From Bugula neritina (Eukaryota; Animalia; Bryozoa), in assembly GCA_964035545.1 (NCBI GenBank), contig OZ037767.1:29466628-29530627 (forward strand): 64,000 nucleotides of DNA, given 5' to 3'. Below are positions 9,590 through 59,872 of the stretch, one piece after another (the stretch's first letter is position 1; the number at the start of each line of letters is the position of its first letter). The notes under the pieces are model-generated. The model was not told the origin of the DNA. It was given only the letters and a program-made list of their open reading frames with translations, and made no database searches. The translations under genes were made by a program, and so were the position numbers.

Positions 9590-11217
<1,628 letters not shown>

Positions 11218-22139: not shown

Positions 22140-29750
<7,611 letters not shown>

Positions 29751-33677: not shown

Positions 33678-35861
33678 ATATGTTACCTGTCATAATTTTT
33701 GTCGTGTTATTTAGTTGCCTCAGAGTTAACTATTCCATATCTTTTAAATAAACTTCTATAAGTCATGATATTCATGAATGATAATAGAAGTTACCTGTAC
33801 AATTCAAATATGAACTAAGGATTGAGCTACTTTAGAAGTTAACTTTTATTATAGTAGTTATCTACTCTTTTCATGCAAGCTAGCAAGGGTAAATAACTCT
33901 CTCTATAAGCTGACATCTCATTTAACGTGCAATACGCTTTCATTAATTTTTGGCTTGTATAAATTATCAAATACATTTAGGTTTTACATGTTCAATGAGA
34001 AATGTATAAAAAGTAGTAAAATAGTGAAAAATGAGAAGTATCGTGTAATTAATATTCTAAAATTAGCGGCCTTAAATTTTCAATTATTACCATTATTTTA
34101 GAAATAATTAAATCATCACTTAGCAAGCCTTTTCAGCATTTTAGATGGAAAGCAGACCATATTTAATAAGGCAACAATTACCACCCTTTGGTTTTATCCT
34201 CTTTGCAAGAGTCAGCCATGCCAGTTAATAGAAGTCTTTTTACATATCTATATATCATTTTATTATAAAGAAGCTGATGGCGCATAGCCATGCTATCAGC
34301 TATTCTTTATTATAGAAAGAAAAAGGAAATCTCCACTATGCTAATTGTTTACGGTCCGAAACCTCGTGCAATCTAGCTGCTGATATTAATATTGCATGGG
34401 GTTAGAAGATTTTTAGCAACCATATGATCAGTAAAGTTTTAGGCTATTTATTTTTTGTTGCAAAATAATCTTTACTCTGCCAGCTTTACAAAAAGTCACA
34501 AAAGAGATTCGTTCCCTTTACATCAGCACTAAAACTTTGCTCTAGGTTAGAAGAAGGTTCACGAATTAGCAGACTAGCCAGCTAAGACTTAGCTAACTGT
34601 TAATTAGTTGTTTAGCAAGTAAAATACCAGGTTACTATTCATAACAATCTACGCAATGAAAGGCTGAAATGCTAAGATATAATATTTACATTATTTACAT
34701 TGAATTATTACAATTACTACGCAATGTAATAAAGGTAGTTTTTGGACTCGCATGCAGAAAACCTGCGTCATGTGGCTCTACGCTTAGTTCAACGTTCGAG
34801 TCAACATCCGGGCTGCCAAAGCATAAAGCCACAGCCAATGGGTAAGGGCGAGCTGCTATGGGGTAACTATCTAATCAAAAACTAAGCGTAATGATAATTA
34901 GTTGTTGCAGGAATCAAGAGATGACCTACTTAAATTCAATGATTTTTTGTCACCTTTCCTGCCGGACTTAAATGCACAGATGACCTATTTAAATGCAACA
35001 ATATGATAAACGTAATGCTGAATACTCCATTGATTATTAGAGAACTGTCACAACTGTAGTATTTTGATTATTTGCTTCTAATAGCCCATATTCTTGTTCG
35101 TGGGGCTAAAAAATTAAATTTTTGTTTACTTCTGATATATTATTTGCACTCAACTCTCAAATATAAACTACTATAATAATATTATAGTAGGCATAGCAAA
35201 TAGAAAAGTCTTAAAGGAGGAGGAAATGAATCCTAATAGTATAACTTCATAAATTATGTATTACGAAACAAAGCTTTCTGTAAGAATATTATGAGAAAGA
35301 TTAATGGTTATACTGTAGTTACATTATAGCGAGCTGACAAGGAACTGGAAATTCCATCGAGTAATGGTGACTGCACAATCCGTATTAGTAGCTCTCGTTT
35401 ATAACTGTGTCAGTTAAATTTATATAGAATCTGTGATCTATTGATTACATGCGTAGTTTGTTTCTTTATTATATGCTGTTAACTCTCCAACAGTTTCTAT
35501 AGGCTGTTATATTAAAACGGTCTCAATATGACATAAGTCATAACTTAATCTAACAATGCTAAAATTGCTTTTACCATCTACACATGGGTAAAAAAAGTTC
35601 ATGTGTTATAGACATTCTTATGCTTATGCTTTTTATATGCTTGATAAAACAGGAAGAGTTGCAGAGTTCTCAAACTAAACACACTTGAAACTCTATCTTC
35701 ACAAAAGTAAGTTGCTTAATTGTTGCTATATTATAGTGATTATAGCTGATTTTTATCAGAAATCTAGGTAGGTTGACTTCAACTAAAAACATAATATCTT
35801 GCATTCAAAATAATAAGAAATATTATAGTACAGACTAACTAACAAGACTACACACTAAACT

Positions 35862-36258
35862 ATGGCAGAACCTGACAACATTCAGCAGGTGGTTGATATA
35901 GATGATGATGAAGATTGGTATGTAGATCTACAGACATCTTATAACTTGTAAGTTTACTTTTTATTTTTTAACATAACACCTATAATTAATGTATTTAACT
36001 GTCACATGTTAAATATTATATAAGAACAAGATGCAATATATTTAATTTAAGAATGAAATGATTACTGTCCGTTGAATGGGGTTGGTAGAATCTGCAGAAA
36101 TTTAGACTATTCTCTCAAGTAATAATAAATGTAGAGATAAATTAACTATAGTTAAGGTTGAAGGTTTAATTGTTGATAAGTTTGCTATATCATTATAATT
36201 ACATATTTGTAGAATAGTTTCAACTTCCAGATTCACCAACAGATTGCCATATAGTTAA
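35862..36258 (+). CDS. Microprotein copy 1, 43 aa: MAEPDNIQQVVDIDDDEDWYVDLQTSYN-LIVSTSRFTNRLPYS. Exons 35862-35947 and 36213-36258
   Basis: Strong Kozak context, GTAAGT donor, TTGTAG acceptor, phase-2 join; homologous to four other copies. Confidence 0.65.
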
Positions 36259-37610
36259 TAAGAGACTTTTTACTTTAATTCCAATCAACAGAGCAGAAGT
36301 TATAAAATAACTCTTCATAACATTTCAGTTTTATTATTATGATAATCATTTCAAAATTACATAATATTTTTATGGCATACAGCCCGTGTTGTAGATACAC
36401 TTTTAGCTAAGAGCTTTATTAAATTAGATTATAATTACTTTTTATAATATTTATTATGTAATACTTTTATTCAATATATGACTCACACATACTGTAATAG
36501 TATGCAGCATGAGCTATATCTAGCTGCATATCTTGTGCATCTCCGTCATAGCTTGTTTCTATTTGTACTTTTTGTTATACTGTGCAACTTTTATGTAAGC
36601 TCATGTTTTTTATTTAATTGTAATGTTTTACATTCTAATATATATGAATTACAGCATTCCTAACAAATAAATCAGGTCAAAGAGCTTTGCTCCTTCAGAT
36701 GCCACCAATGGATTATGTTGATTTTTGATTCCATGTAGAATATAAAAGCTAGTATATAGCCCTGGAAAGCACTCTGTAGAAAGCAAAACTCCCCAAAAAC
36801 TGAGAAAAGAGTAAGAGACTAAAGTGCTTTGCTCCTTGCCTTGTTTTAGTCGTAATTTCTAAATGTGTTACATGTGAAGGGTTTGAAATTTGTTTGATGT
36901 ATATAACTCTATAGGTACGTATGCATGTTCTTTAAAGCTAATGGCTTCCGTAACAATTTGCAGTTTATCCTTCCAGCTTATCAATTCTCATCAGTATGCT
37001 TATCATTTGCTATACTAATAGCAAAGAATATACCATATCTTTGTATGCCTTTATTATCTCTGTGCAAGTAAACAACTAACTGGCATGCATGCTATTACAT
37101 AGTTGTATATGTTCAAAAAGCTTATTGGTTATACTAAAGTGTGAAGCAAAAAATATTTGACTCAGTCAAAACATTTGTTGATATTATTCTGGGTATAACT
37201 AACCAAACTTCATAATTCAGGGTTACAGGGTTGCAGGGTTACAGTTTAGCCATCTTCATAAAACCATATCATTAACATAGTTGCTTATAGTCTCATCTAG
37301 TTGAATGGGAAGCATGACTTGATCCATAAGTCTTGCCATTTAACAGTTGGCTACTGGTAGTGAAGGACTAGCTTATGAGACGGCCACAGTTTAGGTCTAG
37401 GTAAAAGACTGACAGACTTATATTAGACGAGAACTAAAGAAGTAAGTTGCAGCACTATTACATGGTAAAATGTATTGTTTATTGCAGATATAACTATAGT
37501 GACTGTATTTTCTATCATTGGTCAATTAAAACATAAAAAAATTTTATATCAACGAAAATTCAATTTATTATAGCCATTAGACTGTTAATCATAGGATACT
37601 GGATACTGAA

Positions 37611-38203
37611 ATGGCAGAACCTGACAACATTCAACAAGTGGTTGATATAGTTGATGGTGAAGAGTGGTTTGTAGATCCACAAACATCTTATAATATATAA
37701 CAGGTAACTTTAACTGTACGACTTTAATATACATCTTTTGGTGTTAACTAGGAATTTAGTGTGTATCTATAACACATTCAGTGTAATTTAGCTATAAGAT
37801 CTCACAACTTGTGATGAAAAAGATTGATTTTCACCTAAAAATTAAGTTATAAGAAAAGTTGCAATTGCATTAATTATTACTAAATCAGTTACAGCAGCAT
37901 TTTGTGTGCTCAGATATTTTAACACTCTGTAATTAGCTGTCTCAGTTTGATAGATAGAGTTCTATTAATATACAACATGAGGCAGTAGATTTATAGATTG
38001 GCATTCATATTTCTTAATATAGTATACCAATATAGAATTCTATGCTATAATATATAACATAAACTATTTAGTTTATGTTATATTATATTATGTTATAAAT
38101 TCTTATTTTAAGATATATATCATTTTTAATAATTATATTGTTGCTTTATTTGTAGGAATATGTATACTCTTTCAGATTATTCAACAAACTCCATATCCAA
38201 TGA
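37611..38203 (+). pseudogene. Microprotein copy 2 (type B), with an in-frame TAA: MAEPDNIQQVVDIVDGEEWFVDPQTSYNI*Q-EYVYSFRLFNKLHIQ. Exons 37611-37703 and 38156-38203
   Basis: Clear paralog with a stop at 37698-37700, one codon before the donor. It also lacks the TATA box present in copies 3-5. Confidence 0.55.
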
Positions 38204-39352
38204 GAAAGATGATGAACCTTACATTCCTACCACAAGCTAGATAGTATTATATACATACAAATAGAGCTAGCATATATTATGCTCATAGTTATAGCTTAAA
38301 GTATATAACCTATGGTTTATATGTTTAAAAACTTGTCCTCTAAAATACAAAATTCAATAAGTAAATGCAAGCTTTATTGTATTTTAACTGTTTGTATTTT
38401 TTCAATTTTTGCCTCTATAGAGGTTTACATTATGTATGATAATTGGAAATGTGTTATTTCAATATTCTTTTAATAACAGCACATGTATATCACAGCGATA
38501 TTAGCTCATTCGGCTATATAACATTATGTTATTAGGTCATCATCATTTACAGCTCAAACAAACTTACCACGTCTTAAGTAACAATATTACAATATAATAT
38601 GCAAATATATTATTATGTCACAATACTCATTAAATTGGGAGTTATTCTTTCATGTGATTAATAATTATTAAAACAACTTTCACAGCAACAATGAGAAAGT
38701 CACATACAGCCATTATGAGCCAAATGTTTTTATAAATTATTGAGTATGATTTGCCAGAAAAGATTCTATAAAACAAAAGAAGTTCAAAAGTCATCTATGT
38801 TGATAATACCATGAATGAGTAAATGTCATAACTCCATATTATTGTAATGACAAAGTTGTTTAACTCCACCCGCCACCAGAATGGTAGAAGTAGTATACTT
38901 TTAGTAGTAGTGTATTCTAAATATTTCATATATCCAATTATAGACTTGGTGTTTTAGTAGTGAGAGAGATAGATGAAAGTTCTCTTCATTGAGTACTGTT
39001 GTACTTGCAACATTCTAGTAGTAATGTTATTTGTGTAATACAAATGATGCAAGATTTGATTGGTCTAATCTCTATAGGTAACTGTGCATGTGCATTGCTC
39101 AATGCTGGAGTACAGCTATGAGTTTGCATAATAAATTATATTCAGGGAATTTCCCATTGACTATTAGAATATCACATCTGAACAATGAACTCAGTATATG
39201 GCTCAGTATTCTATCAAAAAAGGTCATAACATGAAATAGCATACTTCCTTTTGACTAGGGTACTATTATACATTGAAAGGAAAATTGATGTCAGTGTTAG
39301 ATATATTGAACTATTTTTGATTGGACATCTTTTATAGGTCAGGCGAAAAAGT

Positions 39353-39590
39353 TTTGACTCAGTCAAACTCAGTCAGGAGAATTACTCATTGAGTTAAGTC
39401 AAAGCAGTTTACCTCTCACCAAAGCCTCACTGGATTCATGCGAATTTATACATCTATATCACTAATATTTGCTTACCTTAATGAAAAGAAGTATATTTGA
39501 TGCATATAAGTCTTACCATTCAACAGTTGACCACTGGTGGCAGAGGACTAGCTTGTGAGACTGTCAGAGTTTTATATAAGAGAGTTGGAA
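39353..39590 (+). promoter_or_regulatory. Conserved promoter of the microprotein genes (palindrome TTTGACTCAGTCAAA, conserved block, TATATAA)
   Basis: Palindrome at 37156, 39353 and 52062. TATATAA at 39573, 48754 and 52214, followed by a non-coding first exon ending AG|GTAAAA. Confidence 0.55.
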
Positions 39591-39764
39591 TACTTATATT
39601 AGAAGGTAACTAAAGAAGTAAAGTACAACACTAGAAGGTAAAATACTGTTTATTACTATAACTAGTGACTGTATATTTTCTCAGAGTTTTATTAAAATCT
39701 ATGTAACATATCAAGAATTCATTATAGCCAGTAGACTGTTAATCATAGGTTACTAGATACTAAA

Positions 39765-40334
39765 ATGGCAGAACCTGACAACATACAACAGGTGGTTGAT
39801 ATAGATGATGAGGAGTGGCATGTAGATCTACAGACATCTTATAACTTGTAAGTTTAACTTTCAATACTTATATATACCTTATTTATTATGGGCTTTGGTA
39901 TTTACATTCATATATATTGTACATGCTACACTGATGACATCATATTAGCTGTTGCTCTGCTAACATTATTTTATTATTGAAGTGGAGGCAAGGTTTCTGT
40001 CAAATAGTGTAGCAATTAGAAAGTTGCCACTCATACTAAAGCAGTTTCAATATTAAAAGCAGACTAAAGGGTTGACTTAGCACTCTTTTTTAACTCTTTG
40101 GATCTATAATTATAAAAGCCAGACTTATTTGATCTGTTTATTGGTTATGACAGAGCTTGCATGGTTTAAGTTGCGTTTATACCTCTGCTGAAAAAAGTAC
40201 CGAGTTTAAGTTAATAATGCTTGTCCGGGTATAAAGGTATAAAGGCAACTTTAGACTTGCAAAATATATACATAATATTTCTCTATTGTTTTAGTATAAT
40301 TTCTACTTCTGGAGTGACCAACAGACTGACGTAG
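39765..40334 (+). CDS. Microprotein copy 3, 40 aa: MAEPDNIQQVVDIDDEEWHVDLQTSYN-FIISTSGVTNRLT. Exons 39765-39847 and 40295-40334
   Basis: Conserved ATG, splice sites and stop; synonymous differences from paralogs. Confidence 0.7.
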
Positions 40335-42167
40335 TGAACAGCTAATGAGATATACTTTATATTCTAATTACAGAAATATCAGTTTTTGTTTGCTACAACA
40401 TTTCAGTCCTTCAGCATTCATACAACATTCCTTCGATGCAGATAGGTGCATGTGCAACTAATTCTGAAATATTATTAACTTTAAAAATATTGCATCACTA
40501 TACACTTTTTATGTAAACATTTTAATCAGTTAGTATGCTGGTAACAATCTGCATCTCCTATTACAAATAAGGTAATGCAGATAACATAGAGTACAGCAGA
40601 AAGTAGATTTAACTTTACAAGAACACAATGTTATATAAAATTTTTAATATTATGTACATTTGTAATTTCTGTAATTTATAATGTTTGAACTGACTAGTTA
40701 CATTATATAGTGTTCATGATTGCATATGTTACTGGAAGTCACTTTTCATTGATTTGGTATAATAACTATGTATCCATTGTGTATTTGGCAGTTGCATTTT
40801 TTATATGTTATTTTAATTAAGCTGCAATATTTGTGTCTATATATGTTTGTTATGTTATGTAAACATATACATGATTATATATAAATCCCACAATGTTTTT
40901 ATTGTGATTAATGATACCAAAAGTATTGATTCTGTAGATTGTGTATCCTAAAAAAAGTTACACAATGTAGGGCATTGTTGAAATTAAATCTGCCTGCAAC
41001 ACAAATTACATTCATAAACAAACTAAATCTTTTGTTAGGGGAACTTGACTATAAAGACTCTTATTATATGTAGGTCACTTTTTTGTTAGGTATACTAGTC
41101 AATTAGTGTAAATCAATATAGCAGAAGCTACTATTAGCTAATGTTTTATACTTCGATTGCATGATTGGCTTGACAATTAAGCAAGTAGATAAGTTTAAGA
41201 GAGTTGAGGAGTTGTCCAACCTAAATGTTGGCTTAATGATTAGTTCAGTATACAGCACAAGCCACATTACACTTGTAATATGTCAGACAGTGCCAGAGTT
41301 AAATTACTGAGGTTAGATTTAGTGCGTTCGAGCAAGTTAAATAAAACTACTAACGCACAATAAATATACAACCATAATAATTATACACCTTTGCAATATA
41401 TTACATAAAGTTTCCAAAAAGATATATATGGAATAGAGCGAATATGTTTTTTACACTATGCATGATATTTTGGCGCTATTTTATTAAACTAATGCAGTAA
41501 TTAATCAGTATATGACCAATGTGAGTCATGGAGATTGAAACATTCTATGATAATAATTATTTAAGTGTTAGCTTTCACTGAAAAGTTACACATTCTACAT
41601 TAATTACAAACAATAATTATTATAGAAAAATAAGAATTTCTTTTAAGTTTTCTGTATCTTCAAATGTTGAAACATTATTATATATAGTTTGTGTAGGCAG
41701 TCAGAAGGTTATAATTTATACTAAATTATATAACAAGTAACTCAATAATAAATGTTAGCAAAACTTTCTTCAATTATCATATGTAGAAGCGCAAAGAGCA
41801 TGTAATTTTTACATCTGCCAGTCACTAAAATTATTCTCTTTTTATACAGCAAGCCTTACAGCTTATCATATGATTGGATAAACCATAAAGACATTATTCT
41901 GTAAAAAAAGCATATTAAACTCTCTAACAATAACTTTTATTAGCCACCACGGTTTCATCTCAAAATCAAGATAATAGGCCTATTATGCTATACAGTATAC
42001 ATCATACAAAGACTGTTCACTATTACTACTTTTTAGACATGATCTCATTATCTTAATTAGATAAAAGCTTGTATCATTCTGCTCTAAACAAATAAAAATG
42101 ATAGCTTTTTAAACAAATTAAATTGAAACGACAAGTTATCTAGCTGTTGAAAATCTGAAATCTGAAA

Positions 42168-43098
42168 CTACAGTCCATGGAACTGAGAAGGAGGTCTGGT
42201 CTCCAAGTACGACTTGATCTTTTCATTAGAAGTGAACTTTGCAGCAAACTCAGTGGTCCATGGAGTAAAGTCCATGATGTCAGGGAAGGGAACTCTACAC
42301 AACTCTAGACCTGTGTATAACCAGATGTCTGCCAAACCTATCTGCAAAGGGGAGGTAATTACTATAACAGCGTCGTGCTATTAAGGAGTAAAAGAGAAGA
42401 GCATAGTAAAAAAGCTCACAATATTCAGCACCTGCATGATGGCAGTTTATAAATGTTGTATGTGTACTAACAAACCTCACGAATGTTGACATTTAACTGA
42501 AATTTGGACAGCATTAAATGTGCATGTGGCCTTTTAGTGTATTAAATTTAATAAATTTAAGTTTCAAAAGTACTTATTGTGAAGGGTTGTATTAGAAAGT
42601 AAGCTAAAAACACAAATTTCTCTTGCTGGAAATGTTTAACCATTTAACAGTCTAAGTACCCTGACATTTTGAGTAGTACATGTATATATGATTATATAAT
42701 TAGAAGAAACCTAAGATGACAAAAAAATTTCTATATATGTATAAACTTAGTATCTCTTAATACTTTAATACACTTTAGTATTTTCAGCATTATAATACTA
42801 AACAACCTATTCTTCATAAAATATAGAAAGTGATTAACTTACACTCTTATACCTTATAACTTACCTCATCTGACACTATATACTCTTTGCCCTCCTTCTC
42901 AGCTATAGATTGTATGTAAAGCAACCTTTTAGTTATATACTCTTTGACTTCCTCTTTTACTTCAGCAAAGTTCTCTGGCTCAGGAACACCAAATAGTACG
43001 TGCTTGTAGATATTCTGACCGGTGTAGTTTATAAACTCCATGGTTACTTCTACAACCAAATCGTGGGTTGTCTCCTCTCTTAGATTGTCTCCCATTAA
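42168..43098 (-). pseudogene. 5'-truncated duplicate of the GST (last two exons only: 42865-43098 and 42168-42341)
   Basis: Near-identical to exons 3-4 of the GST at 55976-58068. Homology ends at the LINE 5' end, and exons 1-2 are not found beyond the LINE. Confidence 0.85.
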
Positions 43099-43099
43099 C

Positions 43100-46000
43100 T
43101 AATCTTTCTTAAAAAGTTGTAAAAATTTTTTGTTCGATATGGCTGCTATTCCTGACTGTATGAGTTATACTGTTGATTCATTTAATACCAATATAAGTAA
43201 AGGTTTTCGTATTATACATTGTAATATTTGCAGCATAAAAAAAAACTTTAATCGTCTTCTTGAACTAGGTTGTCAGAAATCAAATCCCCTTTTCACATTA
43301 TATGCTTAAGTGAAACTTTTTTATATGACTACCAACATTCTTTCTTTCCGATTCCAATTATGTATTTGTAGGTGACAGTCGTCCTACTAGATGTGCATGG
43401 AGGCGCGGGGGTCTACGTGCATAATAGCCTGGCGGTCACGGAGACGTTTCCAGTGGAGCTCGCTGGTGCGGAGGTTGTGTCGTTGAGGATTGCTGGGACT
43501 GGTGAGAGGTCGCTCATTCTTACATCTATCTATCGTTCTCCAGGGTCGGATGTCGGTAGGTTTCTTACAGATCTAAACCTGTATATGGCCACCCGGAAAT
43601 AGAGAGGTATGATCATATCATCACTGGTGACCTTAACATTAACACCTTCAGTCCTAATTTAGCCGACTACCTTGATATCATTCACCAATATAACTTTTAC
43701 AACCTGATTACTGTTCCCACTTGCATCTCAGGAATTTCTCAAACATGTATCGATCACATCCTAGTTAATTTCTACTCTCACAATATCACATCTGGAACTA
43801 TTCTTAAAGACACGTCAGATCACCTTCCTGTATTCGCCATTTTTGACAAATTTGAAAATCAAAAATCTACACAAGTATATAAGAGGTGTTATAAAAAAAT
43901 ATAAACCAGAAAAATTACATGAAATACTTGGGAAAACAAATTGGGAAGAGCTGGTTTTTAGCATTCCATGTGTTGAAACAGCTTACAATATTTTTTTAGC
44001 AAAAACTTCCGAAGTGTTTAACTCTGTTGCTCCAATTGTGGAGCATGACCCAACTGTCAAAACACTGTACAAAAACCCCTGGATGACGCCTAATCTTTTG
44101 AAGCAAATCAAGAAAAAAAATGCACTTTTTAATAAGCATAAATCATTTCCGTTCAGCCCTAAACTGAAGTCTTGTTATGTAAAACAGCGCAACAACTTTT
44201 CCCGCTTGATAAAAGAAGCCAAGGAAATTTATTATGAGCTTGTAATATCAAAACAATCATCAGATCCCAGAAAGCTGTGGAACACCATCAACACAGCTTT
44301 AGGCCGTAAAAACAAGCCAAAACAAGCTCTCAATAAAATCCAGCTACCAGATTCAAGCGTTGTCACAAATTCTATAGAAATAGCTTATTCTTTTAACAAA
44401 TATTTTACTGAAATTGGCCCCAATCTAGCTAAAAAAATCCCGGAAATATGTAATAGCCCTGCAACACACTTCACAGAAGATTTTAAAAAATTTGAATTTT
44501 CAATTGTGGATGAGGATGATGTTTTAAAGCAGATGAAAAATATTAATTTATGAGCACAAAGCGGAAGGCCTGGATGGAATTGCTCCTAGACTAGTCAAAG
44601 ATAGTGCTGATTTTCTTGCGGCCCTTTCACACACATAATAAACAACTCTATCCTTAGCTGTATCGTACCATCTAAAATGAAAAGTGCCAAAGTTTTGCCT
44701 ATATACAAACATAAAGGAAATAAATTATCTTTAAATAATTATAGACCTATATCGATCCTACCTATTTTTTCAAAGATTTACGAGAAAGTTATCAACACCC
44801 AAATTCAAAATCATTTGTATGATGAACAAATAATATCAAGCTCCCAATATGGATTCCAAAAATTGAAGGGAGCTCACGATGTCTTGATTAAATTTGCTAA
44901 TAATGCGTTTTCCGCCCTAAACTCGAGTTTGGTTGTCTTTGGAATTTTTATAGACTTTTCAAAAGCTTTCGATACAATAGATCGCCATATTCTCACTAAA
45001 AAACTGAGTAGTGTAAATTTTTCTAACGAGTCTGTCAAACTAATACAGCACTATTTAAGTGACCGAACTCAATGCATTTTCCTAAACAATGTTAACCTCA
45101 GCTCCACTAAAGATCAATTTTAGGGTACCGCAAGGTTCGATTTTAGGTCCTACATTATTCCTACTATATATAAATGACATGATTAAAAGTCCGCAATTCT
45201 TTAACAGCATCTTATTTGCCGATGACACAAATCTTTTTTTTTCATAGCAAAAATCTTAATCACGAAATTTAAACAATAAATAGAAATCTTGAAAGAATAA
45301 AGATCTGGTGCTTCACAAACAAATTAACCCTCAACATCAAAAAGACAAATTTCATTATTGTTAAGAATCCGCAAAATAAACTTCATATCTCCCAACCTCT
45401 TTTTATAAACAATACCGAAATTAACAATGCAGAATCAATCAAATTTCTAGGAATCACAATTGATAAAAATTTAAATTGGGCTACCCATATCGAAAACCTT
45501 CGAAATACACTACGCCAAAATCTGGAACTGATCTATGTAGCTTCCACCTTTCTACCTCGCAAAGTTTTAATTCTATTATATAATAGCCTAATAAATAGTA
45601 AAGTTGTATATTGCTTAGAAGCCTGGGGCAATGCCCCATCCATTTACCTAAATAAAATTTTAACTATTCAAAAAAGACTACTTCGTATAATTTTTCACAA
45701 ACCACCTCGATTTCACGCAGCATCTTTATATAAGGAATCTAAAATATTACCAATTTATGAACTCTATAAACTTCGAATTTGTCTACTCGCCCATTCTGAA
45801 TTTTCGTTATGCCTAGCATCTAACTACCTTCCTCCCTACCCAACCAGACATGCTCCTCTCAGTCTCCCCTTGCCACTCTCCACTACTGCGTGTGGCCATA
45901 GTCAGGTTACCTATCAGATGGCCGACGCCTGGAACTCTCTCCCAAAACATCTGAGGGAGATATGAAGTAGGAGTGAGTTTGCGGTGGCCTTGAAGCAGTT

Positions 46001-46183
46001 CCTGCTTGACTCACTGATTTAGGGTCCGCGCCCTGCGGGCTCTGCTGGCTGCTACCTCTGGGTCCAGCACCTCGACTAGCTTTGCTATTGTGCATATGAA
46101 CCCTCATCACTGATTTTTTTCTATTTTTCAACCTATGACATAAACTATTATTTGATGAAAATACAAACAAACAAACAAACAAA
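43100..46183 (+). mobile_element. Decayed non-LTR retrotransposon (CR1/L2-group-like) ORF2: APE endonuclease + reverse transcriptase
   Basis: Endonuclease motifs IIHCNICS, GGAGVYV, SIYRSP, ITGDLNIN, TCIDHI, SDHLPV. RT motifs YRPISILPIFSKIYEK, QYGF, FIDFSKAFD, VPQGSILGP, LFADDT. Several frameshifts and stops; 3' (CAAA)n tail. Confidence 0.95.
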
Positions 46184-47513
46184 AGTGCCAAATTTAAACT
46201 GCTGAGCCAGATAGTTTACTGACGTGGTGCAAAGGGCATGTCTACCTGGTACAGCTAGTATATCATGCTCAATTTTCAAACTGTTATTATCTGTGTTTTA
46301 TCACTATATGTCTCCATGCATGCATCAAATTGATTTCCTAAAGGATTCTCTTATTGAATTATGCTAGTATAAATCTCAATAAATTTTGCTAAATTTGATT
46401 TTTGGTTGTTGTGGATACAGTAGAAACTAAGCTACAGGATTTCTATTGGTTAAAAGTTTACTGCGGGGCTAGAGACAGTTAGCTTTCAGCATTTGTAGTG
46501 AACTGTAGTGTGATCAGCAAAAAGTAGGAAGTGACGTTAAAGGCAGCTCCAAAAACGCACTCACAGTCAAGTTTCGTTTGTAGTATGCTCGCTAGTAGCA
46601 CGTGAAATAAGTAAAGACATTTAAAAAATCAGGGCTAACCTGCCAGTCAGTGATTGGCTGATCGCTGAACGCTGAAGTTGAGCGTTTGCCATGTCGAACT
46701 TTCATCGCATCGCAAAAAACTGACAGTTGCGTTCAGAAATCAAACAGTTGTGATGTCACAGAGTTCAACGCTTAGCCTCGAAAACGAGTTTACAGTCGCG
46801 TTTTAACTGCAGTCTGTCAACCCCATACACTCATATGTAATTGATTGTTATTGAAAGAATGGAGCTTCCCTAGACAAATATGTATTTACACTATGCATGA
46901 TATTTTTGGTGCCATGTTATTAAACTAATGCGGCAATTAATATATGACCGATGTGAGTCATAGAGATTGAAGAACTGTATAATAATTATTCTAACATTAG
47001 CATTATAGATAACACCTAAATTGTTTTATAAAAAAGCTTTCATTGAAAACTTACAAATTCTACATTAACTGCAAGCAAGAATTATTATGAAAAACAAGAA
47101 TTTATTTCAAGTTTTTTGTTTTCCGATATCTTCAAATGTTGAAACATTATTATATAGTTTGCGTAGGCAGTAAGGAGATTATACTATATACCAAATTATA
47201 CATGTAACTCAATAATAAATATTAGCACAGCTATCTTCAATTATCATATAGAAGCACAAAGAACATATAACTTTTTCCATCCTTAAATAACTATAACTAT
47301 TTTTCTTTTATATACAGAAAGTCTTTTTGGCAACATTAAATGCAAATATTTAATTTAGGTGTTGCCTTTCCAATTGCAATTTGTGGAAGGACAACTCCAC
47401 CTTTCAAAAATATAAATTATAATTTCCGCTTTCATAAATAAATACAGTAGCATATAAACAATTTGAGACTATATTGTCATTTTTACTAAATATTATTGTT
47501 GTTTTATTTGCAG

Positions 47514-47561
47514 AAATATGTATACTCTTTCAGATTATTCAACAAGCGCCATAGCCAATGA
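47514..47561 (+). other. Orphan type-B terminal exon of the microprotein family (KYVYSFRLFNKRHSQ*)
   Basis: TTTGCAG acceptor; homologous to 38156-38203; no leader exon immediately upstream. Confidence 0.5.
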
Positions 47562-48945
47562 GAGAGATGCATGGGTATTACATAGTTCCTACTACAAGCT
47601 AAATAAATAAATACATACAAATAGAGCTAGCATATATTATGTTCATAGGTATAGCTTAATGCATTTATATAATTTAAGGTTTATATGTTTAAAAACTTAA
47701 CCACCAAAATACAAAATTCAATAAGGAAATGCAAACTTTATTTTAACTTATTTTGCATTTTTTAATTTTAACCTCTAGTGATTTACATTATATGTAATAA
47801 TTGTAAATGTGTTATTTCAATATTCTTTTAATAACAGCACATGTATATCACAGCGATATTAGCTCATTCGGCTATATAACAATATGTTATTAAATCTTCA
47901 TCATTTACAGCTCAAGCAAAATTACCACCTTAAGTAATAATATATGCAAATATATTATTATGTCACAATACTCATTAAATTGGGAGTTATTCTTTCATGT
48001 GATTAATAATTATTAAAACAACTTTTACAGCAACAATGAGAAAGTCACATACAGTTATCATGAACCAAATGCTTTTATAAATTATTGAGTATGATTTGCC
48101 AAAAAAGATTCTATAAAAAAGAAGAAGTTCAAAATTCATTGTTGTTGGTAATACTATGAATGAGTTATCATAACTCCATATTGTAATGACAAAGTGGTTC
48201 AACTCCACATGCCATCAGAATGGTAGAAGTAGTATATTTTCAGTAGTAGTGTATTTTAAATACTTCATATCTAATTATAGACTTAGTATTTTAGTAGTGA
48301 GAGATAGATGAGAGTCATCTTCATTGAGTACTGCTTTACTTGCAACATTCTAGTAGTAATGTTATTTATATGTGGTGTAAATGATGCAAGATTTCATTGG
48401 TCTATACTCTATAAAATCTCTAGGTAACTGCATGTGCACGTGCTTTAAGGTACAATGAGTACAATGAGCACAACTATGCCAATGGCTAGGGTACGTAATG
48501 CTAGTAATGCTACCGTAGTAATGTCGATCACATCCTGGAAATTCCAATAAAAGAACGGGGAGCTTAAATGATCATATGAATGAATTAGTCAAGCGGTGCT
48601 CCACTTTGTGCTCCGTGCTTTTGTAAATCTATCATTACTAATAAATATTTGCTTATGTTAAGGAAGAGAAGTATATTTCACGCATAAGGCTTACTACCAT
48701 TTAACAGTTGACCACAGGTGGCAGAGGACTAGCTCATAAGACTGTCACAGTTTTATATAAGAGAGTTGGAATATTTATATTAGAAAGTAACTAAAGAAGT
48801 AAAATACAACACTACAAGGTAAAATACTCTTTATTACTATAAATAGTGACTGTATATTTTCTCAGAGTTTTATTAAAATCTATGTAACATATCAAGAATT
48901 CATTATAGCCAATAGAGTGTTAATCATAGGTTACTGGATACTAAA

Positions 48946-49452
48946 ATGGCAGAACCTGACAACATTCAACAGGTGGTTGATATAGATGATGAAGATTGGT
49001 TTGTAGATCTACAGACATCTTATAACTTGTAAGTTTAACTTTTAATACTTATATATATCTTATGCATTATAGACTTCGATATTTACATTCATATATACTG
49101 TACATGCTACACTGATGACATCATATTAGCTGTTGATCTACTTACATTAGTTTATTATTGAAGTGGAGGCAAGGCTAAAAAAACTATAGCATGGGTTTTA
49201 TCAAATAGTGTAGCAAAGAAAGGTACCACCCATAGTAGAGCGGTTTAGATATAAAAACGAAACTAAATAGTGACATATAGCACTCCTTATGCTTTGGTTT
49301 TGCTTATAATAAAAGCCAGGGATAGTTTTATCTATTCACTGGTTACATTAAACTGCACAGAACTTAGTTTAGACCTTCAACATATATACATAATATTTTA
49401 CTATTGTTTTAGTATAATTTCTACTTCCGGAGTGACCAATAGACTGACGTAG
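48946..49452 (+). CDS. Microprotein copy 4, 40 aa: MAEPDNIQQVVDIDDEDWFVDLQTSYN-FIISTSGVTNRLT. Exons 48946-49028 and 49413-49452
   Basis: Same structure as copy 3; TATA box at 48754. Confidence 0.7.
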
Positions 49453-50847
49453 TGAACAGCTAATGAGATATACTTTACATTCTAATTACAGAAATATCAG
49501 TTTTTGTTTGCTACAACATTTCAGTCTTTCAGCATTCATACGACATTCCTTCGATGCAGATAGCTATATCAATTTTAAAAATATTGCATCACCTTGACTT
49601 TTATGTATCTAATATATTATAGTGTTTTATTCAGTTTATAAGTTTATAACTGATATACTATTTACAACCTTCCTTTTCATCATGCAGTTCAAAAAATTCA
49701 AAGTTGCATGTAATGCCCTCTATAAAGTTGGTGATGATTTATATTTCAATTTATTATATCATTTATTATAAATTACATAACATTACTCTTGCTGGCTTAT
49801 GTCAGCTTAATAGGCATATGTATTATCATAGCTATGTTAGCTACAATTATATTATGTTTTTCTCTATTGTGATTGGTTAATATATACAGCCATTTTAGTT
49901 ACCACATAAAGGCTATCTTTTTAGACTTTAGACTACAAATACAAACCCAGCACTTTCTGTTATTCACTCTCCTTCATTTACAATCTGTGCCGATAAATAC
50001 ACACCTCTATTGAAACACTACAGTTATATTATTAGTATTTATTGAATTGTGACATTAGTGCATTCATGAAACAACCGACACAGAAAAAATATACAATCAT
50101 ATATAAAGCTTTGCAATATATTATATATAAGTCCCAAAGAGATATATACACTCATATGTTGATTGTTATTGAACAAATGAAGCTCCCTCGGACAGATATG
50201 TATTTACACTATGCATGATATTTTGGTGTTATGTTATTAAACTAATGTGGTAATTAATCAGTATAGGACTGATGTGAGTCATGAAGATTGAAAAACTGTA
50301 TGATAATTATTCAAATGTTAACATTATGTATAACACCTAAATTGTTTTATAAAAAAAGCTTTCATTGAAAAGTTACAAATTTTTCATTACTGTAACTACA
50401 AGTAAGAATTATTTTAAAAAAACAAGAATTTATTTCAAGCTTTTTGCATTCCAGCATCTTCAAATATTGAAACATTACTATATAGTTTGCGTAGGCAGTA
50501 AGGAGGTTATACTATATACCAAATTATACTTGTATAACTCAATAATAAATGTTAGCACAACTATCGTCAATCATCATATATAATAGAAGCACAAAGAACA
50601 TATAACTTTATCCATCCTTAAGTAACTAAAACTATTCTTCTTTTATATACAGAAAGTCTTTTTGGCAACATTAAATGCAAATATTCAATTTAGGTATTGC
50701 CTTTCCAATTGCAATTTGTGGAAGGAAAGCTCTACCTTTCAAAAATATGAATTAGAATCTGTGATTTCATAAATAAATATACCATATATAAAATATCATT
50801 TTAGGTAATATTATTTTTACTAGATATTATTGTTGCTTTATTTGCAG

Positions 50848-50895
50848 GAATATTTATACCCCTTCAGATTAATAAGCAAACTCCATAGCCAATAA
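50848..50895 (+). other. Orphan type-B terminal exon (EYLYPFRLISKLHSQ*)
   Basis: TTTGCAG acceptor; same length and stop position as the other two B exons. Confidence 0.5.
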
Positions 50896-52398
50896 GAGAG
50901 ATGACAACAGACCTTACATTCCTACTGCAAGCTAAATATATATAAATAGAGCTAGCATATATTATATGTTTATAGTTATAGCTTAAAGTATATGTATGAC
51001 ATAGGGTTTGAACAATTAAAAACTTTTCCTCCAAAATACAAAATTCAACAAGTAAATGCAAACTTTATTGTATTTTATTGTATTTTAACCTTTTTGTATC
51101 TTCCAATTTTAGCCTCTATATAGAGGTTTACATATACGTAGAATAATTGTACCTGCAGTGTTATTTCAATATTCTTTTACATTGCTACTCATTCGGCTGC
51201 ATAACATTATGTTATTAAGCCTTCAATCACTTACAGCTCAAGCAAAATTACCACCTAAGTCCTAAAGTAATAGTATTGCGTTTTATGTTGTGTAAATTTA
51301 ATATAATTATTATAACGTTGCAATACCCATTAAATCGGGAGTTATTCTTTCATGTAACTAATAATTATTCTCACAACAATAAGAAAGTTACATACAGCTA
51401 TGCATCATGAGTCAAATATTTCCATTTAAACTATTGAGTATGATTTGCCAGAAAAGGTTCTATATAAAACAAAAAAAGTTCAAAAGTCATCTTTGTTGGT
51501 AATACTATGAATGAGTTATCATGACTCCATATTATTGTAATGACAAAGTTGTTTAACTCCACACGCCACCAGAATTGTATAAGTAGTATATTTTTAGTAG
51601 TAGTGTATTTTAAATACTTCATATCTAATTATAGACTTAGTATTTTAGTAGTAATAAGAGATAGATGAAAGTTATCTTCATAGAGTAGGTACTGTTGTAC
51701 TTGCAACATTCTAGTATTAATGTTATTTGTGTAATGCAAATGATGCATGATTTGATTGGTCTATATCTCTATATAGGTAACTGTGCATGTGCATTGATAG
51801 AGGCTGAAGTAAAACCAATAAACTAAAATTATAGTTCAATGGATACAACTATGCCTACTGACTCTGGTAATTGATGTAGATATTCTGGAAATTCCAAGTG
51901 ACTTATTTGCTCTATCAGTATGCTATATATAGCAAACCTTGGTTCATGGTCGTAGACTATATATATAGTTAGTACATTAGATAACATTATTGTTATCGTG
52001 TGTTCACTACATTGAATTAGCTTTTTGATTGGATATCGTTTTTTAGGTCAGGCAAAATAATTTTGACTCAGTCAAACTCAGCCAGGAGAGTTTCTGATTG
52101 AATCTGTTATGACTAAGATGTTAACGAAGAAAAGTATATTTCATGCAAAAGTCTTACCATTTAACAGCTGACCACCGGTGGCAGAGGACTAGCTTATGAG
52201 ACTGTCAGAGTTTTATATAAGAGAGTTGGAATACTTATATTAGAAGGTAACTAAAGAAGTAAAGTACAACACTATAGTATAGTGTCAGGTAAAATATCTC
52301 TTATTACTATAACATCAGAGTTTCATTAAAATCTATGTAACATATTAGGAATTTATTATAGCCAATAGAGTGTTGATCATAGGTTACTGGATACTAAA

Positions 52399-54096
52399 AT
52401 GGCAGAACCTGACAACATACAACAGGTGGTTGATATAGATAATGATGAAGAGTGGCATGTAGATGTACAGACATCTTATAACTTGTAAGTTTAACTTTTA
52501 ATACTTATGTATACCTTATTTATGGTTTAAAACACTCTCACAAGACTAAGAATACATAAGTTATTAATTTACTTGCCAGTTGTAAGCACTACCAGGTTCA
52601 ATGCATTGAGAAAGATATTAGGAATAGGAATACTAGAAAGCTACTGAAATGCCACATAATATATTTATAATTGGCAGCTTTGACTTTTTAGGACTAAAAT
52701 ATATGCTTAATTAACTTGAATTGATGCTACAAGCTTTTGGTAAAAATCAAAATTTTAGTTGATAGAAAGGTTGATAGTTAATATAAAAGATAAGTATTTT
52801 GGAAACCTTCAACCTTTGCAGCTAAATGTACGGATATGAGTAGTATGGCAGTATATACCCAAAATAGCTTCGTTTGTAATCAATAGATCACACATTCTAT
52901 ATAAATGTAAGCAGCGCATAGTTATACATCGCAGCAACTAATACGGAATGTGCAGTAACCTGATTACTCAGTGGAATTCCCAACTTTATATTACTCGTAC
53001 GACTTACTGTCGCATATACTGGATACTATTTATCACATATTTTATTAGTTAACATGCAGACTTTGTAACACAGCTCATAATTATTATGCAAATATGATTG
53101 TATTGTGCCATCCTTATTGCTTCTGCCCAAGCCAGTTGCTTGTTTGACTATACAATACAATACAGACTCTACTACACTACACTGTTACACTGCACTACAC
53201 TGTTACACTGCACTACACTACCCTACACTATACTGTGCTACACTACACTGCACTACACTACACTACACTACACTACACTACACTACACTGTTACACTACA
53301 CTACACTACACTGTTACACTATACTACACTACACTAAACTACACTACACTACACTACACTACACTACACTACACTACACTAAACTACACTACACTACACT
53401 ACACTACACTACGCTATATTACACTACACTACACTACACTACACTACACTACCCTACACTACACTACACTACACTACACTACACTGTTACACTACACTAC
53501 ACTACACTACACTACACTACACTACACTACACTACACTACACTACACTACACTACACTACACTACACTGCACTGCACTGCACTGCACTGCACTACACTAC
53601 ACTGTTACACTATACTACACTACACTAAACTACACTACACTACACTACACTACACTAAACTACACTACACTACACTACACCACATTACACTACACTACAC
53701 TATATTACACTACACTACACTGCACTACACTACACTACACTACACTACACTACACTACACTACACTACACTACACTACACTACACTACACTACACTACAC
53801 TACACTACACTACACTATACTGTGCTACACTACACTACGCTATATTACACTACACTACACTACACTACACTACACTACACTACACTATGTTACACTGCAC
53901 CACCCATATACATAGTAGAACAGTTTCAATATAAAAATAAGACTAAATGTTGACTTTGGTTTTGCTTATATTTTATCTGTTTACTGGTTGCGTTGCATTA
54001 CACAGAACTTAGTTTAGACTTGCAACTATATACATAATATTTCTCTATTGTTTTAGTATAATTTTTACTTCTGGAGTGACCAATAGACTGACATAG
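52399..54096 (+). CDS. Microprotein copy 5, 41 aa: MAEPDNIQQVVDIDNDEEWHVDVQTSYN-FIIFTSGVTNRLT. Exons 52399-52484 and 54057-54096
   Basis: Same structure as copy 3; the intron is expanded by extra sequence that includes an (ACACT)n array. Confidence 0.68.
53167..53897. repeat. (ACACT)n pentanucleotide satellite, ~730 bp
   Basis: Directly visible. Confidence 0.98.
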
Positions 54097-55975
54097 TGCC
54101 CAGCTGATGAGATGTACTTTACATTCTAAGTACAGAAACATCAGTTTGTTTTTGTTACAACCTTCCAGCCCTTCAGCATTCATATAAAATTCTTTCAATT
54201 TTGATAGGTTCATATGCAATTAGTTTTGAAATATTGCATCCCTTTTTATATATTCGATATTTATTATAGTGTTTTATTCAGTTTATAATATTATTCTCAC
54301 TCTACTATTTTACAACTTCCTATGGATTATGAAAAAATTGATGGACCTGCTGTAAAGCTGGTGGTGATTTCTATTTCACTTTATTATATCATATTTTATA
54401 TTACATAGTATTAATTATTTCACTTTATTATATCATATTTTGTATTACATAATGTTACTCTTGCTGGTTTATGTAAATCTTTTAAATCAATTAGTATGCT
54501 GGCAACAATCTGCCTTCCATACTATGAATAAAGTAATGCGGATAACAGCAGATAACATGGAGTACAGCAAGAAGTAGCTTTAACTTTACAGGAACACAAT
54601 GTTATATAATTTAATATTATGTACATTTGTAATTTCTATAATTTATAATGTTTGAACTGACTAGTTACATTATATAGCAGATAGTGTTCCTGATTGCATA
54701 TGTTTCTGGAAGTCACTTTTCAATGATTTGGTAATAATTATGTATCCATTATGTATGTTATTTAAATTGTATTTTGTATATGTTATTTGAATGAAGTCTC
54801 AATATTTGTGTCTATATGTATGTTATAATATACAGTTACATAAAATGATTATAAGAATTACAATTAATATGTTTTGTGGCGTAATAATCAGAAAAGTAAT
54901 GATTCTGTAAACACTTTTGTGTATCTTAAGCTAGGGGAGAATACTTTTCAACAACATCATCGAAATTAAAGCTTCAATAAAAGAACCTGAACAAAAGCTT
55001 TTGCTAAAGGCTAAAAGAATATGACAATAAAGACTATTTTGTTCAAATTAACTGCTTATGCTAATTTTTTGATTGATGTAAATCAATATAGCAGAAGCTA
55101 TATTAGCTTAAGGTAAACTTTGCTGCTCTACGTATACTTACACACCATTAAACAAATAATACAGGCATTACTCAGATAGAAAGCATATTGGAAGCTATAT
55201 TCTGAAATTTTATTAGCCATGGAGGTTATACTTTAAAATCGAGATAATGCTATGCTATAAAATATACACCATACAATGACTGTTCAGTATTATACTAATT
55301 TTTAAACATGGTATGACAAATCTCAATCAGATAAAAGCTTTCTATCATCCTCCTGTAGATGAGTAACAATAATCATTTTTTCAATAAATTAGATTTTTAT
55401 GGAAAATAATATATCAATAACAGGCTAAAAGGTTAAAAATAAATTTTCAAAATTGTTTACCCTTCTTTTACAAATGTAGAGTTCAATTTTACTTGAAAAA
55501 TTAATGTTTATAGAGTTATTTAAATTTTAATAAATATGATATATCTGACTTTCTGAAATGTGCTTATGCTACACATTTATTTAATTATAGATAAGAATTA
55601 TATTATGTGCTAACTTGTATAGACTATGGAATGTATAATTAGATGTAATATTTTTGCAACTGAAATTTATTGAGCGCCAGCATATAATAATATATCGAAT
55701 GTGGTCTATTAAAATATACTTTTTTTATTTTTTTCAGCGGTTTTCATTATGCTTTTATAGTAAGAAAAAAACTAAAATATTATGGCAAATTGTTTTTAAA
55801 AATTGGCTGAATAGAAAGTTAATTTACATAGCTTGTAAATTTAATTATGATCAACTCACCTTATTTGAAGGTGCTATATAACAGTGTAATATGCTTATAC
55901 ACTCAGTTAAGGTGTATACATTATTTAGTTTGTCATATAAATTTAATAGACCATCAACATACTTAAAATATGCAT

Positions 55976-57500
55976 CTACAGCCCATGGAACTGAGAAGGA
56001 GGTCTGCTCTCCAAGTACGACTTGATCTTTTCATTAGAAGTGAACTTTGCAGCAAACTCAGTGGTCCAAGGAGTGAAGTCCATGATGTCAGGGAAGGGAA
56101 CTCTACATAACTCTAGACCTGTGTATAACCAGATGTCTGCCAAACCTATCTGTAAAGGGGAGGCAATTACTATAACAACGCTGTGTTATAAATATTGTAT
56201 GTGTATGTGGCCTTTTAATTAATTAGGTTTTATAAATTTAAGTTTCAAGAGCACTTATTGTGAAGGTTTTGACTAGAAATTACAAGAATATAAAGTAATA
56301 AAATAACAAAGTTAATTTACCATCTATATAGCAGTCTACTGACATTTTGAATAGCAGAAGTATATGATTATATAATTAGAAAAACCCTTATCCATGCAAT
56401 CAATAAATTTATGGCCTTATAATATGTTTTAACTTTTCAGTATTATAATACTACAAAACCTGTTTATCATGAAAGAAAGCAATGAAATATAAGTGATACT
56501 CTCTATTGTTGTGACTTACCTCATCTGACACTATATACTCTTTGCCTTCCTTCTCAGCTATAGATTGTATGTAAAGCAACCTTTTTTTTATGTACTCTTT
56601 GACTTCCTCTTTTACTTCAGCAAAGTTCTCTGGCTCAGGAACACCAAATAGTACATGCTTGTAGATATTCTGACCGTTGTAGTTTATAAACTCCATGGTT
56701 ACTTCTACAACCAAATCGTGAATTGTCTCCTCTCTCAGATTGTCTCCCATTAAACCTGTGTATATGTATTACAGACTAGTTGCTAAAGAATGTTACATAA
56801 GAGTTATGTTGTAGAAACATTGAAGTTTAGTTTATACAACACATGACAAATTATGATTGCGAAATAAGCATTACGTTAATTGGAAATAAACATGATATAT
56901 ATGCTTGTATTGCATGGGATCTTTTATACACAGCAAAAACTGTTTATTTAAAACATGCAAGTATTTTTACTGGGTTTGGTGACAGGTAGCTTTTTAGAAA
57001 ACCATTAAACTGTAGGTTATCACTTTTTGTTTTAGTTTCATATTTATATTTTAATTCTCATATAGTTTAGGCAACAAAGATATTATTTGCATCAGCATGA
57101 AAATCTTATAATGGACAGACATAACAAAGAAGGAAAGGAAATAGAAAGAAAAACAGCTCAGAGCAGTGCGAACTTAGCTGATAGTTTTTTATTTAATGAA
57201 AAGTGATGTATAATTTTACCAGCTGTTATATTAAAGAAAGAATTCAGATTGTGATTTGCTGATATATTATTTTGCTTGTAAGTCTAAAGTACTATAATAC
57301 TATCAGATGGCTGTGTTGACATGCTAGCACATCCTGTGTAGATGACGCAATTGTTATGATGCACGTAATTTACCCAGTTTTTTAGCCACATATCTCGCTA
57401 TAACATTAGACTGACAGAACACCCCATCCTCTGTGAAAAGTACTGGGAGTTGTCCCAACGCAACAGGGTTCTCTAAAACAGTATGGAGAAATTATATTTG

Positions 57501-58498: not shown

Positions 58499-59872
58499 CG
58501 CAACAGTATATCATAATAGTATACTGCTCTGCTATTATATTACAGTAGTTATGATTAGCCACCCAGCATTCACTTATTAATGCATCAGCTGCCCTGAGAT
58601 TAAGAGGCTCACAGCCTTGATGTTGAGAATGAAGACCAGCTGATGGAGCTCAATTTTAAATTAAATTTTTAGCCTTGGATTCTTTGAACTACTGATCCAC
58701 ACCTAATTAGGATCTAATAATATTTGAGTATCCTTTGCCAAGTTTGCCAGTTATAGTGACTTATAGGTTACAATCTAATCCCAAGAGTATTCCGGCAATT
58801 TTAGAAAAGGAAGGTATACAAGGAAGAAAAGATTGTTAGAAGAAAAGCTTTATTATATATGTAATTAGCCTTCTTTAGTTGTTTTATTATTAATATAACT
58901 CTGTAGCTTTCATATACTGTATATCAATTATTTTCTAGTTCACTTCTTGTTCTACTCATCTATATGGTCATATATATCATTAATTTTTATCAACTAAAAT
59001 ATACTAATAATACATATACTAATAATACATATACTAATAATACATATAAATAATTTATTTTTATCGATTAAAATATATTCATGACCTGCCAATAGATTTT
59101 TTCCCAACAAAACTATCATGTAAATAGGCCACATTTTTAACAAAAAATAAACTTTGAGTGAAAGCAGAACAGTGTATAATTCTATATCGGTGACAACGTA
59201 AGTGAACTAGACTTTTAGTGATTTAAAATGAAATTTTATTATTTTGTTCGCAGACAAAAAATTCTTGTTTTTTAAACATAAATATACAGAATGTTAAATT
59301 TAGGCAACATTAAAATTTGTTGAGATTTCAGACTAAATTAACATCTATATAATCTACGTCAGCTTATAGAAGCTAAAAACTAAAACTGGAAGATACAGCA
59401 CATTAAACATAGTATTATAGCTGCCACAGACTTCATAAACTTTTAATTATAGCTTTAACAAAAATTGTAATTGTTTATGTATGGCTTGCGTAAAAACAGC
59501 TATATTTAGATTTAAATGTTTTGCAAAAAGAAATTAAAAACCAACTTGCCAATAAATAAGCTAAAAAGCATGATTTTCAAAATCAAACTAATGAAATACA
59601 ATATGCATAAAAATGTTATTATATAATAATAAATACAGAATCGCAAATTATTAGGACTATTTTAAATAAGTATAAAATAATGAGTCATGTTTTACACACA
59701 AGTGTATCCATAAATTATAGTCAATAATAACTATTTGGCACAATAGATTCAAACACATGTTTAAATATCTGTTACATTGAGCAAATTTAAATAGAAGACA
59801 AAACATGCCACTAGTGGTGATAACTAAATGAATGACCCTGTGAAATATAAATTAAGGTTCCTCATTGGTTGA

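Follow-up and report, generated by a model that had tools for sequence, protein, structure and literature searches.

A 64-kb window of the Bugula neritina genome (64,000 nucleotides of contig OZ037767.1, the whole stretch of DNA analyzed) contains a tandem array of copies of a short exon, termed here the leader exon, around which we describe a candidate family of microprotein genes. The five copies, c1 to c5, have their ATGs at window positions 35862, 37611, 39765, 48946, and 52399, respectively. A degenerate pattern for the first seven leader codons gave five exact matches, all on the plus strand, compared with 0.02 expected by chance, and the leader frame is open in all five copies (28–29 codons), confirming the copies that an earlier reading of this DNA (the original prediction) had placed at these ATGs. 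In searches of the whole 216-Mb assembly, both with a single copy and with a profile, exactly five leader copies were found, all in the window, and the profile search revealed no parent gene in the same genome.

In c1, c3, c4, and c5, the leader frame leads to a GTAAGT donor in phase 2, which overlaps the stop codon closing the unspliced leader frame. The corresponding junctions (35947/36213, 39847/40295, 49028/49413, and 52484/54057) have GT..AG ends and good acceptors, and the tail exons that follow complete the split codon and reach a stop after 13–15 codons. The GT donor and short, stop-ended tail originally claimed for every copy are present in these four; c2 has no in-frame GT donor. The description of the C-terminal exon as variable was overstated, as there are only two tail types, which are homologous to each other, and the tails of c3–c5 are one residue apart. 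At the 5′ end of the frame, the leader ATG carries an A at −3 and a G at +4 in all window copies, and no other ATG precedes it in the modelled mRNA. The region leading up to it contains no ATG in c1 and a single ATG in c3–5, which is directly followed by a stop and located inside the putative intron. In c1 and in its ortholog, found on metagenome contig L008 of a close relative, an in-frame stop lies two codons 5′ of the leader ATG, which is therefore the start in both. The first 13 residues of the leader, MAEPDNIQQVVDI, are invariant, and the leader contains neither Lys nor Arg. The TATA-like core of c1 is also kept in the ortholog, where the first-exon donor is GC rather than GT, and the ortholog of the c1 tail (L008:1957-2004) is open with its stop at the matching place. 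The c1 tail stop is followed by a conserved block resembling a 3′ untranslated region (3′UTR), which extends to about 36345. The features of the array and its surroundings are collected in Table 1.

Table 1. Features of the leader array and of the surrounding window (ORF, open reading frame; LINE, long interspersed nuclear element)
Feature	Position in window	Strand	Remarks
c1 TATA-like element and putative non-coding first exon	element 35632-35639; exon to 35706; GT at 35707	+	read from sequence
c1 second exon	35829-35947	+	ATG 35862; 28 codons + 2 bases; phase-2 GTAAGT donor at 35948
c1 tail exon, coding part	36213-36260	+	15 codons + stop; nhmmer E 4e-27
c2, best read as decayed copy	37319-37700	+	upstream block 37319-37392 without TATA box; leader ORF 37611-37700
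Third "tail" type of the original prediction	38150-38197; further copies 47508-47555, 50842-50889	+	not supported as exon of the leader family
Tandem segmental duplication carrying c3, c4, c5	38094-54930; units about 38094-40950, 46825-49785, 50146-54930	+	self-comparison
c3 conserved upstream block	39501-39637	+	TATATAAG at 39573-39580; candidate short first exon; several GT donors
c3 leader exon, coding part	39765-39847	+	27 codons + 2 bases; GTAAGT donor
c3 tail exon, coding part	40295-40336	+	13 codons + stop
c4 upstream block	48682-48818	+	TATATAAG at 48754-48761
c4 leader exon, coding part	48946-49028	+	
c4 tail exon, coding part	49413-49454	+	
c5 upstream block	52142-52278	+	TATATAAG at 52214-52221
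c5 leader exon, coding part	52399-52484	+	
c5 tail exon, coding part	54057-54098	+	c5 intron 52485-54056
High-copy short element in c3 intron 2	40165-40250		
Non-LTR retrotransposon (LINE) fragment	43843-45123	+	RVT_1, E 4e-16
Dispersed repeat of about 200 nucleotides	49819-50025		
(ACTAC)n array, 717 nucleotides	53171-53887		
Galactose-3-O-sulfotransferase ORF, single exon	9590-10999	-	Pfam E 6e-48
WAP four-disulfide-core cluster	23178-29750	+	at least four exons; ORFs at 23178, 25988, 27019, 29064
99-residue ORF	56451-56750	-	degraded copy 42835-43098

Comparison of the units places c1 apart as an older paralog. It is alignable with the other copies only over ∼117 bases at the leader (about 35847–35963) and ∼147 bases at the tail; its introns are not alignable with theirs, consistent with the strong divergence originally noted. 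Among the younger c3–5 units, identity is 0.94–0.98 in the leader coding part, 0.93–0.95 in the tail coding part, 0.86–0.91 in the upstream block (with an identical 23-base TATA core), 0.85–0.89 in the spacer, and about 0.6 in intron 2, an order of conservation that fits functional parts. The array has expanded through tandem duplication of whole segments, with copies gained and lost; it is confined to this locus and occurs in one close relative only. We also considered a dispersed transposable element, which the original prediction had named as a possible undoing of its claim. It was rejected, since the five leader matches all fall at one locus, in a tandem segmental duplication, and the repeat unit is not dispersed: used as a DNA query, the 3.3-kb unit matched this locus only, apart from a dispersed piece of ∼200 nucleotides. 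This piece has at least 35 copies, 67–94% identical, on at least nine contigs and resembles a short interspersed nuclear element (SINE) or a miniature inverted-repeat transposable element (MITE). The LINE fragment is inserted between repeat units. The (ACTAC)n array makes up much of c5 intron 2 and gives rise to spurious ORFs of 226–282 codons. Intron 2 of c3 harbors a very high-copy short element, at which word depth rises from ∼90 to >50,000; one contig from a genomic DNA run skips 85 bases here (40164 to 40250), so this element may be polymorphic.

Relatives of the leader were sought using single exons as homology queries. We compared a profile built from the five leader copies with 1.84 billion representative proteins, irrespective of length, and obtained two hits only, P0001 and P0002; a word-indexed search of 5.8 billion protein clusters with P0001 as the query returned only these same two. 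Both result from mechanical ORF calling, terminate at the donor stop, and lie on short contigs from two Joint Genome Institute (JGI) samples. No longer protein with the leader at its N terminus was found among the 1.84 billion representatives. Matches in a protein atlas were at chance level only (139 shared features) and were set aside. The contigs of the relative are collinear with the window, with 77–86% identity over the longer non-coding matches. L008 contains the c1 ortholog (leader, intron, and tail) together with a second, c3/c5-like copy, and contigs L006 and L007 contain a third copy, ∼570 bases behind sequence matching window 61342–62103, where the window has no copy. The relative hence adds three further distinct leader copies, all of them open. 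Because the L006/L007 copy has no counterpart in the window, leader copy number and position differ between close relatives. On L006:1-1178 and L007:1-917, sequence matching window 59503–59950 abuts sequence matching 61342–62103; ∼1.4 kb of the window is either absent in the relative or inserted in the window, and the leader copy follows in the relative. A degenerate DNA pattern had no match in metagenome contigs, a collection that may omit records close to this genome, and the minus-strand ORF over the c5 tail, used as a query for tail-bearing contigs of the relative, also found no match.

With the copies of the relative included, the leader frame is open and the stop position shared in eight of eight distinct copies. 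Homology of the leader begins at the ATG (L006 compared with c4) or within 15 bases of it (c1 compared with c3–5) and ends ∼15 bases past the donor. The conserved block is therefore bounded by the start codon and the splice site in three flank contexts, those of c1, c3–5, and L006. Among the 20 distinct leader variants, nine were scored as synonymous, compared with 4.4 expected at random placement (permutation P 0.011), while the other two frames of the leader give three and four. The changes are also unevenly spread: leader codons 1–13 and 25–28 show five synonymous and no replacement changes, and the replacements cluster in codons 14–24. Nine of the ten pairwise leader comparisons give ratios of replacement to synonymous substitution rates (dN/dS) of 0.13–0.43, based on very small counts, and between orthologs the coding parts of leader and tail are free of indels. 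The synonymous differences and the 3-nucleotide indel listed in the original prediction are present. The indel falls within a GAT run, where slippage by three is expected, and so says little on coding.

The second copy, c2, is best read as a decayed copy. Its frame hits a stop three bases before the only GT (37704), the donor region is rearranged, and no tail of the c1/c3 type was found after it. In L008, the segment bearing c2 (36972–38324) is missing at the orthologous place. The original prediction had joined c2 to an exon at 38150, giving a third tail type, but this join would need a non-GT donor. We rejected this exon as the c2 tail: it reads in phase 0, compared with the phase-2 donors of the family, the phase that would fit is broken by indels, and its similarity is at background level, with copies 0.81–0.90 alike compared with 0.85–0.89 for the surrounding spacer.

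Several analyses addressed whether the leader belongs to a known RNA, protein, or larger gene. No Rfam family matched window 33000–57000 at E up to 1, and RNA folds of the five copies were not more stable than those of shuffles (z 0.2 to 1.2). AlphaFold renders the leader exon as coil, with a predicted local distance difference test score (pLDDT) of 67. The leader has no Pfam match above the gathering score, in agreement with the earlier statement that it falls in no recognized family; a match to MHC_II_alpha (18 bits over 20 residues, with a cut-off of 23) was taken as chance. The original prediction had noted that splicing of the leader into a long downstream ORF would undermine it. Behind acceptor-like sites we found no downstream open frame in leader phase that recurs at matching positions among the copies, and the only long frames in this phase lie in the LINE fragment.

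Collectively, it is about an even call whether the locus harbors a young, lineage-restricted array of small tandem genes whose products would be disordered acidic microproteins, with the leader as the constrained part. That the copies form a family of real transcription units is, taken by itself, probable, and given that the units are genes, we lean toward the tail being joined as originally modelled. The proposed hidden tandem family of spliced microproteins is a fair reading for four of the five copies, which are probably spliced, but not for c2, and an intracellular microprotein, which had been offered as the second choice, remains our best guess. The array would consist of four intact units (c1, c3, c4, and c5) and one decayed unit (c2). 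An intact unit would comprise an upstream block with a TATA box and then, probably, a short non-coding first exon; in the second exon, the first ATG in good context would open the frame, which would pass through the phase-2 GTAAGT donor into the short tail exon. Transcription, exact splicing, and translation are steps that we infer. The product would likely be a disordered, strongly acidic peptide without Cys, located in the cytosol and about 41–44 residues long, or 28–29 residues long were the intron kept, since the stop overlaps the donor. The constrained portions would be the N-terminal 13-mer and the TSYN end of the leader, with the acidic stretch around the Trp between them free to vary and the tail at most weakly constrained. 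Such a peptide would most likely act by binding a partner through a short linear motif formed by the fixed N-terminal peptide and an acidic-aromatic patch. This suggestion, which favors neither catalysis nor a folded domain, draws only on the composition of the peptide, its disorder, and which of its residues vary and which do not.

The similarity of the leaders among paralogs calls for caution. The c1 and c4 leaders differ at only 2 of 84 bases though their introns are not alignable, compared with 10 of 37 differences in their tails (Fisher 1e-4), and the c1 leader differs from its own ortholog at nine bases. Seven sites, counted by hand in the variant table, unite c1 with c4, and no site unites c1 with the ortholog. 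The exon tree therefore contradicts the flank tree, indicating gene conversion of the leader among paralogs. Because of gene conversion, synonymous sites look too conserved among paralogs, and selection arguments that rest on paralog similarity alone are weakened.

The main rival to a microprotein family is a non-coding duplicated exon: the segment would be a non-coding transcript or untranscribed DNA, its frame incidental and its similarity among paralogs kept by gene conversion rather than peptide-level selection. We hold this to be a realistic, though rather doubtful, account; of the following results, all of which weigh against a microprotein family, most favor it. Gene conversion is demonstrable and, on the sequence comparisons, could alone account for the similarity of the leaders among paralogs. 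Two of the nine leader variants scored as synonymous sit in doubly changed codons and are replacements, which brings the true count to seven and the excess to a marginal P of about 0.1 by estimate. For the tail, 7 of 15 variants are synonymous (P 0.23), which is no coding signature. The coding constraint originally claimed is therefore modest for the leader and is not borne out for the tail. Between orthologs, the leader (0.895) and tail (0.875) evolve at the rate of the introns (0.88), and in one copy of the relative the leader Trp is changed to Leu. Every tail stop is more than 150 bases away from any canonical poly(A) hexamer, and in c3–5 the first such hexamer is at a distance of 429–782 bases, compared with one per 300 bases window-wide; the gene model may therefore have a further exon after the tail. 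Finally, neither protein collection holds a transcript-derived or annotated protein carrying the leader, and the sole sequencing run matched is genomic DNA, since its contigs cover the introns evenly; as the run search used a 5-kb query, a length that masks small RNAs, this outcome carries no weight on expression. Against an incidental frame stand the start of homology at the ATG in three independent flank contexts, the open frame of all eight leader copies, the favorable start context in every window copy, and the restriction of changes in the invariant stretches to synonymous ones when the other frames are unbiased. In addition, we found no RNA structure or Rfam family that would give an RNA-level reason for constraint.

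Two further alternatives keep the leader as coding sequence but alter its context. It is unlikely, in our estimate, that the leader alone is functional, as a 28–29-residue peptide ending at the donor-overlapping stop, with the tail serving as 3′UTR or being irrelevant. The stop is indeed kept at the matching place in all eight copies, including c2 with its rearranged donor region and 29 codons, and the tail, besides its lack of a coding signature, has a divergence between c1 and c4 ten times that of the leader. However, the stop belongs to the GTAAGT consensus, so that its retention follows from that of the donor, and c2 looks decayed in other respects. Moreover, the frame and stop of the tail are kept in c1, the c1 ortholog, and c3–5, and its coding part is the second-best conserved feature among the units. 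More improbable still is that the leader exons serve a larger downstream gene, either as alternative first coding exons or as upstream ORFs. Each copy does have its own promoter-like block and donor, as in variable first exons, and no poly(A) signal was seen close behind the tails. But no protein of any length among the 1.84 billion representatives, beyond the mechanical ORF calls, has the leader, leader-phase frames do not recur at matching positions (the long ones being confined to the LINE fragment), and the tails were duplicated along with the leaders and are not shared.

The original prediction had preferred to view the array as precursors of ribosomally synthesized and post-translationally modified peptides (RiPPs), in which a fixed acidic recognition leader precedes a Ser/Thr-rich core destined for excision and modification. 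To our mind this is exceedingly improbable. What speaks for it is the general shape only: a short, Cys-free precursor with a conserved N-terminal part, several copies, and Ser/Thr in the tail. There is, however, no hypervariable core, as variation falls in leader codons 14–24 and the tails are two homologous types, and neither an invariant flanking Pro nor a dibasic site was seen as a conserved cleavage residue. The larger window ORFs that were tested (the Pfam scan covered ORFs of ≥90 residues and a few shorter ones) match only galactose-3-O-sulfotransferase, WAP, and reverse transcriptase and include no tailoring or processing enzyme. On the chromosome (contig C3), the Peptidase_S9 match closest to the array lies at 1.36 Mb, a distance of 28 Mb, and UstYa gave no match in a search run without a positive control. 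The RiPP assignment is therefore unsupported. This bryozoan lineage is known for symbiont-made natural products, and we know of no RiPP pathway encoded by an animal genome; that this host would encode a RiPP-like pathway, in which cytosolic, signal-less, acidic-leader precursors are processed or modified into bioactive peptides, is a notion to which we give almost no credence.

Known systems share single traits with the leader family. The fungal MSDIN precursors of amatoxins and phallotoxins carry a hypervariable core between invariant Pro residues and are processed by a dedicated prolyl oligopeptidase; like them, the leader family would encode short precursors that lack a signal peptide, share a conserved N-terminal part, and come in multiple copies, but no hypervariable core, bounding Pro, or dedicated oligopeptidase was seen for it. 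The insect tarsal-less/polished rice gene encodes repeated small ORFs of 11–32 residues on one polycistronic transcript. The leader array is similar in that one locus carries a number of tiny, nearly identical ORFs sharing a conserved peptide core, whereas each leader copy comes with a promoter-like block and splice sites of its own, the copies are 2–9 kb apart, and there is no sequence similarity to tarsal-less. DSS1/SEM1 is a small, acidic, disordered, Trp-containing protein that acts via partner binding and is universal and single-copy. The leader peptide is likewise acidic, Trp-containing, and predicted to be disordered, but the family is confined to one lineage and has no detectable sequence relation to DSS1/SEM1. 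The closest parallel in kind may be the taxonomically restricted (orphan) small-ORF and microprotein genes of animals, reviewed in PMC12684174 and PMC10032668. Like them, the leader family would have products shorter than 50 residues that are predicted to be disordered, lacks a domain and any homolog beyond a narrow lineage, shows a coding signature that is weak but detectable, and is of a size missed by ORF-length cut-offs. It differs in being multi-exonic, arranged in a tandem array, and subject to gene conversion, and in being known from sequence alone. We class it as a new orphan family of an already known kind.

If the peptides are made, the array would add a microprotein family, restricted to one lineage and so far unannotated, to a phylum in which functional genomics has hardly begun. 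It would also offer a small-scale example of gene conversion holding a tiny coding exon near-identical while its surroundings decay, and of copies coming and going between sibling species. As a candidate, it is useful for studying the origin and persistence of small genes and as a caution about ORF-length cut-offs in annotation, and we expect no change of thinking outside the small-gene field.

Other genes of the window lie mostly upstream of the array. In the WAP four-disulfide-core cluster, the ORFs at 23178 and 25988 are near-identical duplicates, and the ORF at 29064 encodes two WAP domains and, after them, a long tail rich in Lys and Asn. The frame upstream of the galactose-3-O-sulfotransferase ORF stays open through a (GT)n microsatellite. 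The 99-residue ORF, which has no Pfam family, lies inside a duplicated segment, and its relatives are found only on contigs of a JGI metagenome sample that also holds leader relatives, with 87–89% identity; it is possibly a second orphan gene at the locus.

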